Of a stretch of DNA of 64,000 nt, positions 3,276 through 58,314 are shown in pieces. The notes under the pieces are model-generated. The model was not told the DNA's origin. It saw nothing but the letters and a program-made list of their open reading frames with translations, and searched no databases. The position numbers were made by a program, and so were the translations under genes. The stretch lies in the sequence record MW879340.1; one strand, 5' to 3'. How positions within the stretch are numbered: the stretch's first letter is position 1; each line of letters starts with the position of its first letter.

Positions 3276-3617
3276 ATGTCGGATGTTGTTATCGTATCAA
3301 AACAATTGCTCGAACGTTTGTTAGAAACGGTTGAGTGTAACGATCCACGCAACGAATACCTGAATGCGGTACGTTCAGAGATCGCCAAGAATGAACACTT
3401 GCGTGAAACGGCTGATGACGTAATGCACAAGTTCCACATGGAATCAGGCAGTGCGTCGTATCATGAACTGGATCGTAAAAACAAGAAGTGGCTGATCATG
3501 GGTGAGTTTGGACTTGACCCGTTGAAAGTCATGGTAATGTATTTGGCTAACCCTCCCGCTGACAACCAAGGTATGCTCGTGCCATGGGACAACCTGAAGG
3601 ACTTCAATGATGACTAA
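3276..3617 (+). CDS. hypothetical protein
   Basis: AAGGAG RBS. Confidence 0.8.
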   Translation: MSDVVIVSKQLLERLLETVECNDPRNEYLNAVRSEIAKNEHLRETADDVMHKFHMESGSASYHELDRKNKKWLIMGEFGLDPLKVMVMYLANPPADNQGMLVPWDNLKDFNDD

Positions 3618-3861
3618 ACAAGAGATTGCATACATCGCAATCGGCTTGCTATTAACGGCATCAGCGTCAGCTAAGGCTGATACGGTTAACGTTAATCAGT
3701 GCACAACCAATAACAAAGATTCGGTTATTGTGACTCAGTGTTCTGATGGCACCGTAACCGTAGTTAATGCCGCCGTCAATACCGTATTGATCTGTCACAC
3801 TAAAGACGCCGGGCATGTACCGGTGTGTGGCCAGTATAAATTAACAGGGGTCGACAAGTGA
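3607..3861 (+). CDS. small exported protein (signal peptide, 4 Cys)
   Basis: K, hydrophobic core, then ASA-KA-D cleavage-type pattern. Confidence 0.7.
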   Translation: MMTKQEIAYIAIGLLLTASASAKADTVNVNQCTTNNKDSVIVTQCSDGTVTVVNAAVNTVLICHTKDAGHVPVCGQYKLTGVDK

Positions 3862-4502
3862 GCAAACATAAACGTCGTAAAGCAGCGCAACGTAAACAAC
3901 ACAACGTCACGGCTAAAGACCGTGCACGTGAATGGCAGGAGCGTTTGCTTAAATCGCGCACACAAGCTGAGGTTGAACGCGCACTACGTGCTGCTGAAAC
4001 CAAAGAGGTTAAGATCAGCGAACCGCTTCCGCCTACTGACCCACTGTCAATGTTACTTGACGGTGTGCTTGATGGTGGTCGTGTGCGATCTGCCAGTCAG
4101 TTACTTCCCGGCCTTTATAATCCAGACGGTACGTTAGATCTTCTCAAGATTGCGACTCGCTTCCAAAGTCTGGGCGGGGTTTCGTTTATCGACACTGAAG
4201 GTTCGTTGTTCGGTCATTCTGAAACAACGCGTGATAAGGATGGGGTTTGGACAACCGTGTGCGAGCCAGGTATGCAGATGGCGCGTAAAGACATTAAGGT
4301 CGGTAACCCTAACGACAAACACACCGAACAGTGTATGGCGCGCCATATGGCTCGTGTGAACGAGGCTGGCGAAGCTCAGACTAAGTTGCTGGAAGCCGGA
4401 GAAGAAGCGTTAGCGTGTTATCTGCTGCCAGTGCTGATGGTGTGTACTTGTGACCAAGTCGATGAACCGGAGAACGAAGATGACGCCAGCCGAATACAGT
4501 AA
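3858..4502 (+). CDS. hypothetical protein, basic N-terminus, FIDTEGS motif
   Basis: GTGA overlap with the previous stop. Confidence 0.75.
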   Translation: MSKHKRRKAAQRKQHNVTAKDRAREWQERLLKSRTQAEVERALRAAETKEVKISEPLPPTDPLSMLLDGVLDGGRVRSASQLLPGLYNPDGTLDLLKIATRFQSLGGVSFIDTEGSLFGHSETTRDKDGVWTTVCEPGMQMARKDIKVGNPNDKHTEQCMARHMARVNEAGEAQTKLLEAGEEALACYLLPVLMVCTCDQVDEPENEDDASRIQ

Positions 4503-9279: not shown

Positions 9280-9312
9280 ACAGCGGGGAAACCACCTCGC
9301 TGTTTTTTTTTT
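9280..9312 (+). terminator. intrinsic terminator
   Basis: ACAGCGGGG-AAACCA-CCTCGCTGT followed by a long T run. Confidence 0.8.
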
Positions 9313-9326
9313 GTTGAGGTGAAGTA

Positions 9327-9737
9327 ATGGCTAAGGTCTATAGCAAGATAGTGGCAATCGCCTGTGACTTTGCTGGTGACTTCTCATTCCCTAAGCTCCG
9401 GGAATGTTTGCCGCCAAATACCCGCATTGTTGCACTGTACAATTTTGCCACCGCCACGCAATTCGCAGAAGACGTTAAGTCAGCGATGAAACGCAGCGAT
9501 GTCATTGTTGTCGATACCAGTGAGCACACATTACGCTTTCTTAAGATGTTGGATATTCCGTATCAGCTTATCTTTGTTGGTAACTATACCACGGATGACG
9601 AATACCGCCACATCAAGAACTGTCGCTTACAGCCGAACTGCATCCACACCGAGCTGGAAAAGCCGAGTGATTTCGATAAGTTAATTTGGCACTACCGTCC
9701 TGATACAGGGCTGTCCGTTGAATACCCATCGGCATAA
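9327..9737 (+). CDS. hypothetical protein, possibly a degenerate P-loop/kinase-like fold
   Basis: GAGGTG RBS; DVIVVD Walker-B-like strand but no intact Walker A. Confidence 0.7.
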   Translation: MAKVYSKIVAIACDFAGDFSFPKLRECLPPNTRIVALYNFATATQFAEDVKSAMKRSDVIVVDTSEHTLRFLKMLDIPYQLIFVGNYTTDDEYRHIKNCRLQPNCIHTELEKPSDFDKLIWHYRPDTGLSVEYPSA

Positions 9738-9788
9738 AAGCATGAGGGCTTCTACTCCTTTGCGGGAGTAGAAGCACCTCTATGCCGA
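9729..9788. terminator. bidirectional terminator, GGCATAAA..TATGCCG family
   Basis: Convergent junction; inner stem GCTTCTACTCC/GGAGTAGAAGC flanked by TCGGCATA/TATGCCGA. Confidence 0.8.
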
Positions 9789-10268
9789 TTATGGTTGTTT
9801 TTTATTTGCTTCGATGAAGGCTTTCTCTAAATCAGATAAGCCATTATCTTTTACTTCGTCACGTTTCTTCCCGTAACGAATAGCCTGCGCTGACAGCATC
9901 TTCTGTTTCGAGTAGGTATACTTCATCCATCTGTCGAAAGGAATCCCCAAGAACTCGAAGATCCGGTTATTGAGGTACTCTTCGATATACCCACCAAACC
10001 CACTGACCAACAAGGCGTCTTCTTGATCCACTTGGCTGACCAGTGAGAACGGCGATAGATCGGCATCGTGATTCACAAACCCATACGTATCGTCGTACAG
10101 CTCCAATAGCCGTAGTGTGGCAACTTCCTTGTCGCCACTGAGGAACTTGGGATCTGTTAATGCTGCTTCCCAAGCCCCACTACGATCACTGTAAGCGCTA
10201 CCGAAATCAGGGTGGATTAGATGTCGGCGCTCGCTATAGAACTGTTCAGCGTATTCGTTAAGAGGGTA
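9789..10268 (-). CDS. -1 frame extension of the upstream 550-aa protein (putative tail-assembly-chaperone GT-like part)
   Basis: Frame open from about 10305 to the stop at 9789; no ATG/GTG/TTG before TTG 10106, which lacks an RBS; entered by the slippery T TTT TTT at 10274-10268. Confidence 0.65.
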   Translation of the reverse strand, partial: YPLNEYAEQFYSERRHLIHPDFGSAYSDRSGAWEAALTDPKFLSGDKEVATLRLLELYDDTYGFVNHDADLSPFSLVSQVDQEDALLVSGFGGYIEEYLNNRIFEFLGIPFDRWMKYTYSKQKMLSAQAIRYGKKRDEVKDNGLSDLEKAFIEANKKQP

Positions 10269-11869
10269 AAAAAAGCTCGTTCCATGTTGACTGGCGTGAA
10301 CACAGGGAACTTCTCACCCACGGCCGGTTGACGCTGACCGCACGCGGTGCACTTGTAACGCGGCAGTGCAACTACACCGACCGTCATGTCGTTGATGAAG
10401 TTACCGACTTCTTTGTAGAAGCTTTCTTTGAAGGCCTCGTCCTTGCTGAGTTCTTTCAGTGCTTCGTACAGATCTTCTTCACCTTCAACGAAGCCGTCCA
10501 CCTGACCAGTAGAATCGAGGTAGTCAATACGACGGACCCAGTGAGCGTAGTTACGCAGTGCCGTAATAGCCGCTTGTTTGTTGATGTACTGAACACGTTG
10601 TTCACGGGTCAGCTCATCTTTAAACGACAGCGTTACGGAGTCTTCGATTGCATCCAGCCATGCATTACCTGCCAGCAGTTTGTTATCGATTGCCGGTACA
10701 CTGAACACAACACGCACACCCGGGGTGATATTCACAACGTTCTCACGAATCGCAGTGAAGTATTCCTGGTATGCCATGACCTGATCCAGCGTATGGCCGG
10801 ACTGGCGACGCATATGCGCTTGTTGTGCTTCAGTCAGACGGGCGTTGTCAATAATGATCATGCGGCCAATGTTGACTTTATGCACGTCGACGTTACCACA
10901 TTTGGCCGGATCAACCTGGCAAGGCTGTGCCAGCATGTAGCCGGAACGGAAACGCGCAGCCATGTAATAGCCAACGATCAGCGGGATGTCCTGGATCTTA
11001 ATGACCGCACCCAGTTCCTTCTTGTTGACTTTACCCATGGACGTACTGACGATCATGTTCGCCAGCATATCCCACAGGTGACGCAGCACGATCACGTCGG
11101 AGTTGGAGAAGACCAGACCCGCAGTACGACGACCCAACACAGACTTAGACGCCAGTACACGAGTATGGAAGTTAACCATCTCGTCTTCACCCGCAACCAA
11201 CAGCGTTAGCCAGATACCAGAATGCGGAATTGGGAAGGTGATGAAGTCACCGATCTGCATTTCCTGACGCGCACGCACCATCGCATCACGACCGGTCAGT
11301 CGCTCACCTTTCTTGTGTTTGCTGTTGTTGATGGTCGGGCGATAACCACCACGGACCTGGTTGTCGATCAGGATACCTTGCAGCCAGCGACTGTTTGTAC
11401 GCTCAACGGTGTCGGTCAACCCGTTCATGTAAGCCATGTGGTTGATAGACTGTTGTGTAGCGTTCAGCCATTCCATGGTTGCCGGCGCACCTTTCAAACG
11501 CACCATCTCACGGAACATTTCAGTTTCCGGAGAATCCGCTTTACCTTCATTAATCCCGTTCACGAGATCGTTGATGGTCATCTGGTCGCCGTGGGCTACG
11601 TGCAGTAATGCAGACAGCTCTTCGTACGGCTCCAGTACGCGGGAGATACGAGGATCGACAAACAGGTCATCGAGTTCGATCTCTGGGATTTCAGGCAGTT
11701 CCAGGCTCGGATCAAAACCTTCTTCCAGATCACCACCAGTTGGATCACTACCCGGACCTGACACGCCCGCATCACCGATTGGTTCTGGTGCAACGGCTAC
11801 GCCAGCAGAAGGTACCGGAATCGCATCAATGTCAATTGATACGTTTTCTTCGTTAGTTGGTTCAGTCAT
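10217..11869 (-). CDS. conserved jumbo-phage protein, putative tail/baseplate assembly chaperone (two Cys pairs)
   Basis: 550 aa; acidic N-terminus; CQVDPAKC and CTACG motifs; function inferred. Confidence 0.7.
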   Translation of the reverse strand: MTEPTNEENVSIDIDAIPVPSAGVAVAPEPIGDAGVSGPGSDPTGGDLEEGFDPSLELPEIPEIELDDLFVDPRISRVLEPYEELSALLHVAHGDQMTINDLVNGINEGKADSPETEMFREMVRLKGAPATMEWLNATQQSINHMAYMNGLTDTVERTNSRWLQGILIDNQVRGGYRPTINNSKHKKGERLTGRDAMVRARQEMQIGDFITFPIPHSGIWLTLLVAGEDEMVNFHTRVLASKSVLGRRTAGLVFSNSDVIVLRHLWDMLANMIVSTSMGKVNKKELGAVIKIQDIPLIVGYYMAARFRSGYMLAQPCQVDPAKCGNVDVHKVNIGRMIIIDNARLTEAQQAHMRRQSGHTLDQVMAYQEYFTAIRENVVNITPGVRVVFSVPAIDNKLLAGNAWLDAIEDSVTLSFKDELTREQRVQYINKQAAITALRNYAHWVRRIDYLDSTGQVDGFVEGEEDLYEALKELSKDEAFKESFYKEVGNFINDMTVGVVALPRYKCTACGQRQPAVGEKFPVFTPVNMERAFFTLLTNTLNSSIASADI

Positions 11870-11871
11870 GC

Positions 11872-12321
11872 TTAATTACCCTTTTGGTCGTTTTGCGCTT
11901 TCAATGCGGCAGCGTGAGCCTGTTCGTTAGAGTTAAACAACGGCACGAAGTAATTGTCCCAGAGCTGCAACATGTTGCTTTGAATAAGGACATATTCTTC
12001 ATGAATCGCCAGGAACTGTGCGATATCACTTGCAGCCATCGCATTACCTTTACGTCCAAGGTGTTTAGGATGAATGGCTGCGAGCTGTTGTTCGGTATTC
12101 TGAATGCAGGTCAGCAACGTTTCGATGCATGGATTCAGAATATTAGGATTCGGATGGAAATGGATAATGTTTGGATTAACCGCGAGCATGCACTGATTAC
12201 GATACTGCTGGAGCAGCTCAATCGTATAGTGTCTAACACCGGTTTCCAGGTATTCCCAGTTGCTCTCGGGCGCTGGTTGTGCCTCTGGTTTTGCCAGTGG
12301 ATAGAGTGGTGTGGTTGACAT
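11872..12321 (-). CDS. hypothetical protein
   Basis: AAGGA RBS; tiles directly into the next minus-strand gene. Confidence 0.75.
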   Translation of the reverse strand: MSTTPLYPLAKPEAQPAPESNWEYLETGVRHYTIELLQQYRNQCMLAVNPNIIHFHPNPNILNPCIETLLTCIQNTEQQLAAIHPKHLGRKGNAMAASDIAQFLAIHEEYVLIQSNMLQLWDNYFVPLFNSNEQAHAAALKAQNDQKGN

Positions 12322-15296: not shown

Positions 15297-15665
15297 ATGT
15301 CAGACAAAAACGTAATAGAAGTTGTGTTCGATACTCGTAGTCCGGATTTTAGTAGTGGTGCTCAGCACGCTTCATTGATTAATCAGGTGGACGAATTGCT
15401 ACGTTCCGGTAAATTGTACAACAAACTCGAGATCACACAATGGGCGGCGTACGATAACGGTGAACTGGTAACAAGCGATGAGAATGTCCATGTTCCTATT
15501 TATCGTCATTTTTACCACGACCAGAAACATAATAAATTTGGTGGTGGGTTCATGCTGTTTGAGTTGTTAGAAGATCTGAGACGTTATTACGATTTCGCTG
15601 ATTTCCTCCCAGGGATGTCAGAGAACTTTGAAATGACTTACACCATCACCGTTACAGTGGCATAA
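15297..15665 (+). CDS. early hypothetical protein
   Basis: AGGAG RBS. Confidence 0.8.
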   Translation: MSDKNVIEVVFDTRSPDFSSGAQHASLINQVDELLRSGKLYNKLEITQWAAYDNGELVTSDENVHVPIYRHFYHDQKHNKFGGGFMLFELLEDLRRYYDFADFLPGMSENFEMTYTITVTVA

Positions 15666-15765
15666 CCTCAGTCATCCAGCGATAGGTACCTGGCATTAGT
15701 TAAGTTGGACATAAAGAACCTATCTTACTGATAGTAGACCTATGTCCGAATTAAAGGAGTGTTGT

Positions 15766-16572
15766 ATGTACGTGTTAGTAATACTAACGGTATCAGGGAC
15801 TGACACTAAGCATCTATCGGTAATTGACGAAGATGGAAAGAAGGAGTTCGCCGGCATGTTGCTAGGCCGTCGAGCACAGAAGGGTGAGATCGCCAATGCT
15901 CACTTTCGTAAGGTACTGGCCGAATCAGTAAGCCAGCATGTGGATGTGCAAACGCTGTCACCCGATGGGGCTGACGGATGGGAAACTAAAGAGGAGGCCG
16001 TACGTCAAGGGTATGCGTACATCAATAGCCAAATCGCCATTCACAATAACAAGGATCTGCGTGAGATCGTTAACATCGGCGACTGGTTAGACAAACCTGG
16101 CTGTGTAGGTTGGGGCGATGGTAGTAAGCAATACACAACCAGCCTAATTCGCATGGTCATGCGTACCAATGCCTGGGATGCCCAGTTGACGTTAAACCCA
16201 ATCCCTGAGAACAAGTGGCCAGAAGACTGCGATCGCTTTACCGAAAAGACAGACGAACCCATCATCTACAAAGATGAGCGTGAAGACTCATGGGCTTGCA
16301 TCATGATCAAACACACGGAAGACCCTGGCTTTGTGGTGCTGGTAACCCGTGATGTTCGCGCAGTGGAAGAGAACCCACAACGTTATTATCAGGCGGTGTA
16401 TAAAAAGCTACCACGCTTTGCCCGCATGGTGGATCGTTACCAGGGTGAAGATCTTTACTATCAGGTCATCACAGCAGGGTCAGAAGATCGTTGCCGTAAC
16501 AAAGCACGTGAGATGCTGGCGAAGTACGTGGATGATATTCGTTGTCTTAACTTTGAATCGGGGAATTGGTAA
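15766..16572 (+). CDS. hypothetical protein, degenerate GIY-YIG-like domain(s)
   Basis: AAGGAG RBS before ATG 15766; NIGDWLD motif shared with 20103..20897. Confidence 0.7.
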   Translation: MYVLVILTVSGTDTKHLSVIDEDGKKEFAGMLLGRRAQKGEIANAHFRKVLAESVSQHVDVQTLSPDGADGWETKEEAVRQGYAYINSQIAIHNNKDLREIVNIGDWLDKPGCVGWGDGSKQYTTSLIRMVMRTNAWDAQLTLNPIPENKWPEDCDRFTEKTDEPIIYKDEREDSWACIMIKHTEDPGFVVLVTRDVRAVEENPQRYYQAVYKKLPRFARMVDRYQGEDLYYQVITAGSEDRCRNKAREMLAKYVDDIRCLNFESGNW

Positions 16573-21800: not shown

Positions 21801-21864
21801 GTCATAAAGGAGCTCTTGTTCCCTTCGGGGAACAAGGCTCTCTTTTTATGCCGCTCTTTTTTTT
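21801..21864. terminator. bidirectional terminator, TTATGCCG family
   Basis: CTTGTTCCC-TTCG-GGGAACAAG; convergent junction. Confidence 0.8.
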
Positions 21865-22713
21865 TTACCTGGGGGTAACGTCTCGTGTATTGGTGTTGGG
21901 GAATAGACGACCCTCACCCCAAATGATCCTGATCACACCCCGACCACCACCTCCCGCTCCGTACTTGGTATCGACGTAGCCATTGGAATCATCGGCACGT
22001 GAGCCTTGACGACCATATGCAGAATATATGCTGCTAGACGCCGCACCAGGAACACCCATTCCATATGGTAACGTACCGCCACCGGCTCGCCCTACTTTAT
22101 CAGCACCACCACTGCTACCGCTTCCGTTATTACCAACGGCACCGTTGGTGTAGTCAGCTCTACCTGCCGGCGCGGTGGCATTGTATCCAGCTGCCGCCCC
22201 TGCACCGCCCGCGCCACTGCCAGCCACACCAGAAGCACCCGCACCACCAATGCCGCCGCCGTCGTTTATTTCATCAGCGCTCTTACCGCCTAGACCACCC
22301 GTGCCACCAGGGCCACTTGAACCAGTAGAGCGACCGCCTTGCCCGCCTTTAGCAATACATAGGTAGCTGTCTTCGCGTAGAAGATATGTGTCACCACCTG
22401 CGCCAGCGATACTGCTTGCTGACGATACATTGCTCCCAGCCGCACCGACCACTAATGTCAACGTTTCACCCGGTGTAACACGGATGTTATTGCGCCAGGA
22501 TAACCCTCCACCACCGCCTCCTCCGCCATACCAGTATAGGCCACTGCCGTTTGAACCGCCGAACGTAGCCATACCACCACCTCCCGCGATAACAACAGCA
22601 CAGATTGATGTTACCCCGTCAGGCACGACCCATTCACTGGTGCCCAACGTATCGACCATAACTTGACCTTTACGCGATACAGGGCCTCCGCCCGCTAGTA
22701 TAAATTCAAACAT
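21865..22713 (-). CDS. glycine-rich putative virion accessory protein, MFEFILAGG N-terminus
   Basis: CAT at 22711-22713 and TTA at 21865-21867 show it is on the minus strand (track label says +); W.VP.GVTSI..V.IAGGGG Gly-rich domain pattern. Confidence 0.75.
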   Translation of the reverse strand: MFEFILAGGGPVSRKGQVMVDTLGTSEWVVPDGVTSICAVVIAGGGGMATFGGSNGSGLYWYGGGGGGGGLSWRNNIRVTPGETLTLVVGAAGSNVSSASSIAGAGGDTYLLREDSYLCIAKGGQGGRSTGSSGPGGTGGLGGKSADEINDGGGIGGAGASGVAGSGAGGAGAAAGYNATAPAGRADYTNGAVGNNGSGSSGGADKVGRAGGGTLPYGMGVPGAASSSIYSAYGRQGSRADDSNGYVDTKYGAGGGGRGVIRIIWGEGRLFPNTNTRDVTPR

Positions 22714-58247: not shown

Positions 58248-58314
58248 GTCATAACGCAGTTACCTACCCCGCAAAGGGTAGGTAACTGCAATTATGCCGA
58301 TACTCTTTTTTTTT
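58248..58314. terminator. bidirectional terminator, TTATGCCG family, GCAA loop
   Basis: GCAGTTACCTACCC..GGGTAGGTAACTGC; convergent junction. Confidence 0.85.

Follow-up and report, generated by a model that had tools for sequence, protein, structure and literature searches.

Tail-assembly-chaperone frameshifts are known from phages P2 (E/E+E′) and Mu, and a conserved frameshift of this kind in long-tailed phages, that of lambda gpG/gpGT, was reportedly described by Xu, Hendrix and Duda in 2004. In lambda G/GT, the upstream open reading frame (ORF) carries an X_XXY_YYZ heptamer a few codons short of its stop, and a −1 slip there generates a C-terminally extended minor form of a chaperone, a non-virion morphogenesis protein. 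The lambda-type chaperones often lack a strong stimulatory structure, and their frameshift is conserved far beyond sequence similarity. A −1 slip on a homopolymeric heptamer, which gives products with a shared N-terminal part in a fixed ratio, is also used by E. coli dnaX (tau/gamma) and by the IS3-family transposases. Here, we analyzed a locus that would resemble both systems in its −1 slip and its pair of nested products, except that at dnaX it is the unshifted product that is longer. It lies in a 64,000-nt stretch of sequence record MW879340.1 (hereafter the window, meaning this whole stretch), from Erwinia phage pEa_SNUABM_48/37, a jumbo phage of 294 kb. Close to the 3′ end of a long ORF homologous to gp77 of phage phiKZ, a run of seven T residues (T7) quite probably constitutes a programmed −1 ribosomal frameshift site yielding products of 550 and 693 amino acids (aa), as judged from the sequence and its conservation. 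As for lambda, the extended protein is proposed, from predicted structures, to be a non-virion morphogenesis protein. The elements of the site, in window positions, are as follows.

10217..11869, minus strand: long zero-frame ORF, homologous to phiKZ gp77; encodes the short product (550 aa plus stop)
10268..10274, minus strand: putative slippery heptamer T_TTT_TTT in X_XXY_YYZ phase, made up of the Phe533-Phe534 codons and the preceding wobble T
10217..10267, minus strand: predicted dual-coding overlap, in which 16 zero-frame codons plus stop share the DNA with codons 1-17 of the −1 frame
9789..10268, minus strand: predicted −1 frame extension, 159 codons plus stop, which would be entered only via a shift at the T run
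9789..10106, minus strand: downstream ORF of GenBank, QXO10774.1, 105 aa with a TTG start, named "hypothetical protein"

Across the run, the zero frame reads GCT (10276-10274), TTT (10273-10271), TTT (10270-10268) and ACC, corresponding to residues 532-535, and the heptamer is followed by 16 sense codons and a TAA stop (10219-10217). Starting at 10313, the −1 frame stays open as far as a stop at 9791-9789, and the first ATG, GTG or TTG that it contains in the window is the TTG at 10106, with no Shine-Dalgarno-like sequence 5′ of it in the window sequence. The use of this TTG as the start in GenBank leaves an apparent 110-nt gap behind the 550-aa ORF. An earlier note on this DNA had proposed a hidden −1 frameshift that joins the two frames. 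Codon reading bore out its placement of a T_TTT_TTT heptamer in X_XXY_YYZ phase near the end of the 550-aa ORF, its view that no start codon precedes an RBS-less TTG at 10106, and its predicted slip product of 693 aa (534 + 159 residues, a count only). The −1 frame also reached 9789 as the note had it, although it opened at 10313 and not at about 10305.

According to the proposed mechanism, the majority of ribosomes on the gp77-like mRNA would end at the TAA codon and release the 550-aa protein. A minority would slip back by one base, with the two tRNA-Phe on UUU UUU (10273-10268) re-pairing on U_UUU_UU, and would then read the −1 frame to 9789 to produce the 693-aa protein. The long form would have its first 534 residues in common with the short one and would carry a 159-residue, mostly helical domain in place of the 16-residue tail. 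By the logic of lambda G/GT, applied outside that family, the frameshift would fix the ratio of a plain form to a form with an extra binding domain. We infer the slip and its efficiency from the architecture described above and from its conservation.

T7 runs as such were not rare, with 12 matches in the window versus 8.95 ± 3.8 in shuffled sequences, and in-phase heptamers of the relaxed pattern were chance-expected in any 550-codon ORF. The run at 10274-10268 was the sole run of at least seven T residues in the window to lie inside a long ORF. The heptamer is significant because it is conserved across relatives, not because of the run itself. To follow this conservation, loci were gathered from GenBank (10), from IMG/VR (62, found via a motif far from the run) and from metagenome contigs of close relatives (8), which gave 66 distinct loci, or junctions; codon choice and the −1 pieces were counted on 63 loci. 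The GenBank phages comprised phiKZ/KTN4, 201phi2-1, SPN3US, LucasX, Agricanvirus, SA002, Proteus phage 10 and FLC9. TTT-TTY Phe-Phe codons occupied the homologous place at all 66 junctions, within T runs of five (4 loci), six (12), seven (19), eight (27) or nine (4) residues, and the canonical T_TTT_TTY was present in 56 of the 66 (T_TTT_TTT in 38 and T_TTT_TTC in 18). The first Phe codon, which would occupy the P site, was TTT in 63 of 63 loci, whereas TTT accounted for 33% of the other Phe codons in the same genes (341 versus 678); the wobble base preceding the Phe pair was T in 53 of 63. The zero-frame stop followed 8-32 sense codons past the run, and the −1 frame remained open for 150-181 residues in every one of the 66 loci, with the +1 frame usually closing fast. 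A T7 run in identical phase was present in all of 11 close relatives (60-95% protein identity), where it and the next 8 bases were 99% conserved.

At the protein level, an alignment of 110 sequences with 23% mean column identity contained six invariant columns, F533 among them, and F534 was conserved at 90% or more. The zero-frame tail past the run was constrained as well, with T535 and L536 at 90% or more among 23-26 sequences and L536 again at this level in the 110. This constraint bears on the explanation that a sequencing error in the homopolymer, or a recent frameshift mutation, split a single 693-codon gene. Homopolymers are error-prone, and both GenBank records that match the window exactly originate from a single laboratory; yet the tail showed constraint of its own, the same split recurred at 66 distinct loci whose sequences stem from many laboratories, platforms and metagenomes, and the frame relation stayed constant while run lengths varied. 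No fused homologue of ~690 aa was found among the 66 loci, and all 27 homologues retrieved by a word-index protein search measured 320-565 aa. Likewise, the 150 best of 1,709 clusters from a profile search included no fused gene; their members had 453-645 aa and ended within ~20 residues of the profile end. We consider an artefact or gene decay of this kind extremely improbable.

The −1 frame carried a coding signal of its own. The 63 distinct −1 pieces were conserved over their whole aligned length, with residues 18, 24 and 25 at least 80% identical, and F22, Y58, P73 and E83 reached at least 90% in an alignment of 50 extension sequences. In the 11 close relatives, variability within the gap after the zero-frame stop was 0.35/0.35/0.87 by −1-frame codon position, and the zero-frame third-position variability dropped from 0.95 upstream to 0.50 in the overlap. 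Because of this codon-position periodicity in the −1 frame, the "intergenic gap" is, by its substitution pattern, coding sequence in a frame without a start codon, and the ORF of QXO10774.1 is most likely merely the 3′ two-thirds of the extension. In 20 of the 66 loci the −1 frame opened no more than 4 codons before the run, in one of the loci exactly at it; therefore, the shift must fall at or just after the run.

These data also address the arrangement that GenBank and metagenome gene callers have adopted, two ordinary genes with a downstream frame that starts on its own, at an internal or non-canonical codon (TTG 10106 in the window), and a T run that merely encodes a conserved Phe-Phe. The Phe-Phe pair is indeed conserved in the zero-frame protein, and T4 gp26 also ends near a Phe-Phe, without slippery codons. 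However, the first possible start codon lay 10-153 residues inside the conserved −1 piece (median residue 37; 63 pieces) and varied by locus. In 47 of 63 loci, the −1 frame lacked any ATG, GTG or TTG from its upstream stop as far as the conserved His, and these loci have no start upstream of the conserved extension residues. In window positions, both the −1-frame periodicity and the conserved residues appeared well before 10106, a TTG without a preceding Shine-Dalgarno-like sequence. Protein coding alone also leaves unexplained the use of TTT in 63 of 63 loci against the 33% background. Two independently started genes thus appear highly unlikely. All comparative tests suggested in the earlier note, namely a slippery heptamer conserved in phase in orthologues (canonical in 56 of 66) and a −1 frame conserved at the codon level between the heptamer and 10106, spoke for the hidden frameshift.

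Stimulatory elements are common but not obligatory at programmed −1 frameshift sites. The dnaX and IS3 sites combine A_AAA_AAG with two such elements, one upstream and Shine-Dalgarno-like, the other a downstream hairpin or pseudoknot, and neither was present here. In the window, the 68 and 128 nt past the run folded like shuffled sequences (z = −0.66 and −1.7, respectively), and over 61 loci the mean z of the 3′ region was −0.56 versus −0.67 in control windows, in agreement with the failure of the earlier note to see a convincing 3′ stimulatory structure. A Shine-Dalgarno-like core 5-20 nt upstream of the run occurred in 4 of 58 loci, similar to controls, and Rfam gave no family match at the site. 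With neither a conserved 3′ structure nor a 5′ Shine-Dalgarno-like element found, the run seems to act alone, if the ribosome shifts there as proposed. The folding results and the rarity of the Shine-Dalgarno-like core weigh against programmed ribosomal frameshifting, and three further points fall on the same side. In 10 of the 66 junctions, the first heptamer position was G (G_TTT_TTT in 6 and G_TTT_TTC in 4), where P-site re-pairing would be imperfect; we found no report of a trans-frame protein in the literature; and slippage of the polymerase would give an identical protein, to which the comparative evidence applies equally. The G-first loci, which include FLC9, Noxifer and possibly Phabio-like phages, keep an open and conserved −1 frame. 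They would represent natural variants showing the weight of P-site re-pairing.

With transcriptional slippage, the phage or host RNA polymerase would stutter at the T residues, and those transcripts that gained a single additional U would direct the synthesis of the 693-aa protein. The nature of the slip site, a T homopolymer of five to nine and mostly seven or eight residues with no ribosomal stimulator, is compatible with such a process, and transcription in these phages relies on multisubunit polymerases of an unusual kind that they encode themselves, with a subunit gene located 1.4 kb away. However, 16 of the 66 loci carried T5 or T6, which is short for efficient polymerase slippage, given what is known of slippage-prone runs. 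Moreover, strict conservation concerned the in-phase TTT-TTY pair and the preceding wobble T (53 of 63), a pattern that tRNA re-pairing fits better than run length does. Both the strict conservation of this codon pair and the occurrence of T5-T6 in 16 loci therefore favour the ribosome over the polymerase, and we regard transcriptional slippage as unlikely.

Although a ribosomal shift at the T run would follow the scheme of lambda G/GT, the locus departed from that system in several ways. Its upstream part has 550 aa, compared to ~100-150 aa in the lambda-type proteins; it is not placed between tube and tape-measure genes; and its heptamer is U_UUU_UUY in all canonical cases. No match to a tail-assembly-chaperone family was found in Pfam or PHROGs. 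Identity with lambda G/GT thus found no support in size, neighbours or homology, and nor did the idea in the earlier note of a G/GT-type chaperone pair.

A different class of morphogenesis proteins came into view from structure prediction. The AlphaFold2 model of the long ORF had a predicted local distance difference test score (pLDDT) of 72.8 and a predicted template modelling score (pTM) of 0.74, with the first 80 residues disordered. A Foldseek search of BFVD with this model returned about ten non-orthologue models named T4-like baseplate hub assembly protein, chaperone or subunit (E 3e-5 to 2e-2, probability ≥0.99, target-normalised TM score 0.44-0.60, both sides being predicted models). 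The T4 proteins gp26 and gp51 appear among the hub assembly chaperones in PMC3004832, and in the T4 sequence used here, whose accession was taken from PMC10175313, both fall into Pfam PF12322 (T4_baseplate; 1e-64 and 1e-52, respectively). PHROG 150, "baseplate hub", was weakly matched by 3 of 23 relatives of the long ORF. Hub-type names have already been used by some depositors (AH06 and MJ359). A further likeness is that T4 gene 26 has two nested products, but its 26′ arises from an annotated internal start. The T4 genes concerned are located as follows.

15803-16429 of the T4 record: gene 26
15405-15803 of the T4 record: gene 25

Profile comparison with hhalign aligned the C-terminal Cys-x-x-Cys … Phe-Phe stretch of the long ORF with the very end of gp26. 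The T4 Phe-Phe is encoded by TTC TTT, with the stop three codons on and no extension. Gene 25, which lies in the −1 frame and overlaps gene 26 by TAATG, was considered as its frameshift partner and rejected, as it has its own ATG and the Phe pair reads TTC TTT.

The long ORF may tentatively be placed, from the predicted fold, in the T4 gp26/gp51 class of baseplate-hub assembly proteins as a non-virion assembly factor, which we hold to be possible but short of probable. Several results weigh against this assignment. The window protein and its 23 relatives gave no match to PF12322; the hhalign alignment with gp26 was weak (12-31% probability) and, as with gp51 (2-9%), covered just the C-terminal 26-40 columns; and the protein is more than twice as long as its T4 counterparts. 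The long ORF lies outside any tail, baseplate or hub gene cluster, no relative of it or of the extension was found in PDB by sequence or profile, nor any for the long-ORF fold, and the similarity that the assignment draws on is exclusively one between predicted structures. The T4 gp26-like character that the earlier note ascribed to the upstream part thus received some backing from the BFVD fold matches and little from hhalign. Its comparison of the extension with gp51 or GT was not supported: hhalign gave 0.3% against T4 gp51, and no relative was detectable outside the extension's own family. The extension model was helical at low confidence (pLDDT 63, pTM 0.37).

Four Cys residues of the long ORF, C317, C324, C507 and C510, were conserved at 90% or more; they form a C-x6-C and a C-x2-C pair ~185 residues apart and, from this conservation, make a probable metal-binding site. 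In the phiKZ virion atlas, gp76, gp77 and gp78 are not mentioned, and the lack of gp76 and gp77 there fits a non-structural role. In the record of 201phi2-1, neighbouring genes are flagged as found by virion mass spectrometry, and gp136, the homologue of the long ORF, is not.

The family to which the long ORF belongs is large. Its annotated relatives comprise phiKZ gp77, 201phi2-1 gp136, EL gp47 and SPN3US gp39, and tblastn with the long ORF found it in 216 phage records, most alignments stopping at query residues 536-545, that is, at the T run. A profile search of 1.84 billion representative proteins yielded the 1,709 clusters at E ≤ 1e-3, of which 1,193 had E ≤ 1e-30; a second word-index protein search, seeded with the alignment, returned the same 26 proteins with no additions. 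The long ORF matched PHROG 4585/8054, families with no assigned function, and the extension was matched from its first residue by PHROG 13274, also without an assigned function. Pfam contained nothing relevant for either piece or for the 23 relatives. In the published core-genome table of Chimalliviridae, phiKZ gp077 is core gene cg18, a "hypothetical protein", and the rows consulted contain no entry for gp076 between cg17 (gp075) and cg18.

The downstream ORF has been called from differing internal ATG, GTG or TTG starts, giving products of 68-153 aa (81 aa for the phiKZ type), and homologous residues of the extension are thus coding in the annotation of one genome and intergenic in that of the next. 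None of the twelve GenBank records inspected carried a frameshift annotation. No published description of the frameshift was found in the freely searchable full-text literature, including the Chimalliviridae core-genome work, the phiKZ and Goslar structures, the paper on PRFect, a study of SPN3US genetics and a jumbo-phage review from 2026, and several mentions of a "gp77" there followed the numbering of other phages; the impression in the earlier note that it is undescribed for phiKZ-like phages agrees with this. A programmed −1 frameshift in a phage gene of the morphogenesis type is known as such, and what is notable here is the family-wide reach of the proposed event and its having been missed in annotation.

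If the frameshift occurs as proposed, a single recoded gene with two products would comprise phiKZ gp77 and the small ORF downstream of it, gp76, which has been called inconsistently, and the extension would be as universal as core gene cg18. At least 216 GenBank phage genomes carry a gp77-like gene, and the locus offers a concrete starting point for a family-wide conserved protein without an assigned function, as well as a compact comparative case of frameshifting on U_UUU_UUY without a detectable stimulator. It also suggests that hub assembly proteins of the T4 type are connected with the frameshift logic known from lambda-type tail chaperones. Extending this connection, gp77 and gp76 together could represent the missing tail or hub assembly chaperone of nucleus-forming jumbo phages; its recoding would be obligatory throughout Chimalliviridae, would occur in over 1,000 sequence clusters and would have been overlooked by all annotations inspected. 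T4 gp26/gp51 and lambda G/GT would then share one principle, the setting of a ratio between a plain and a tethering form, by a frameshift or, in T4, by an internal start. We regard this extended proposal, with the shared principle and the two ways of setting the ratio, as doubtful. Under it, phage factors that target either the ribosome of the host or the polymerase of the phage might set the efficiency.

Two further features adjoin the proposed recoded gene.

11872..12321, minus strand: upstream ORF, 149 aa, homologue of phiKZ gp78; PHROG 10945
9733..9793, both strands: strong hairpin overlapping the extension stop, flanked by convergent genes; candidate terminator

The stop of the gp78-like ORF (11874-11872) directly adjoins the ATG of the long ORF (11869). 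The two ORFs probably share one transcription unit, and the abutment of stop and ATG at 11869-11874 suggests translational coupling within it. The neighbourhood of the long ORF also contains homologues of phiKZ gp79 (head) and gp80 (virion RNA polymerase β′), as well as small hypothetical genes. At the other end, the hairpin at 9733-9793 had a folding energy of −35.2 kcal/mol (z = −7.9), with 0 of 200 shuffled sequences as stable, and is situated between convergent genes ending at 9789 (minus strand) and 9737 (plus strand); a simple promoter and terminator scan had missed it. It is likely to be the bidirectional transcription terminator of the unit. This only strong hairpin of the unit lies 3′ of the extension stop rather than of the zero-frame stop, a placement consistent with a single transcript spanning both frames.

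An additional ORF of 111-114 aa, absent from the window, stands between the extension and the convergent gene in SA002 (3749-4087) and in several close relatives from metagenomes (about 3570-3960). The window contained three other runs of at least seven T residues, at 9303-9312 (T10), 21857-21866 (T10) and 58306-58314 (T9), all outside ORFs of at least 60 aa. Two of them are flanked by convergent ORFs and the third by tandem ORFs, and they are probably terminator tails or promoter-region tracts.

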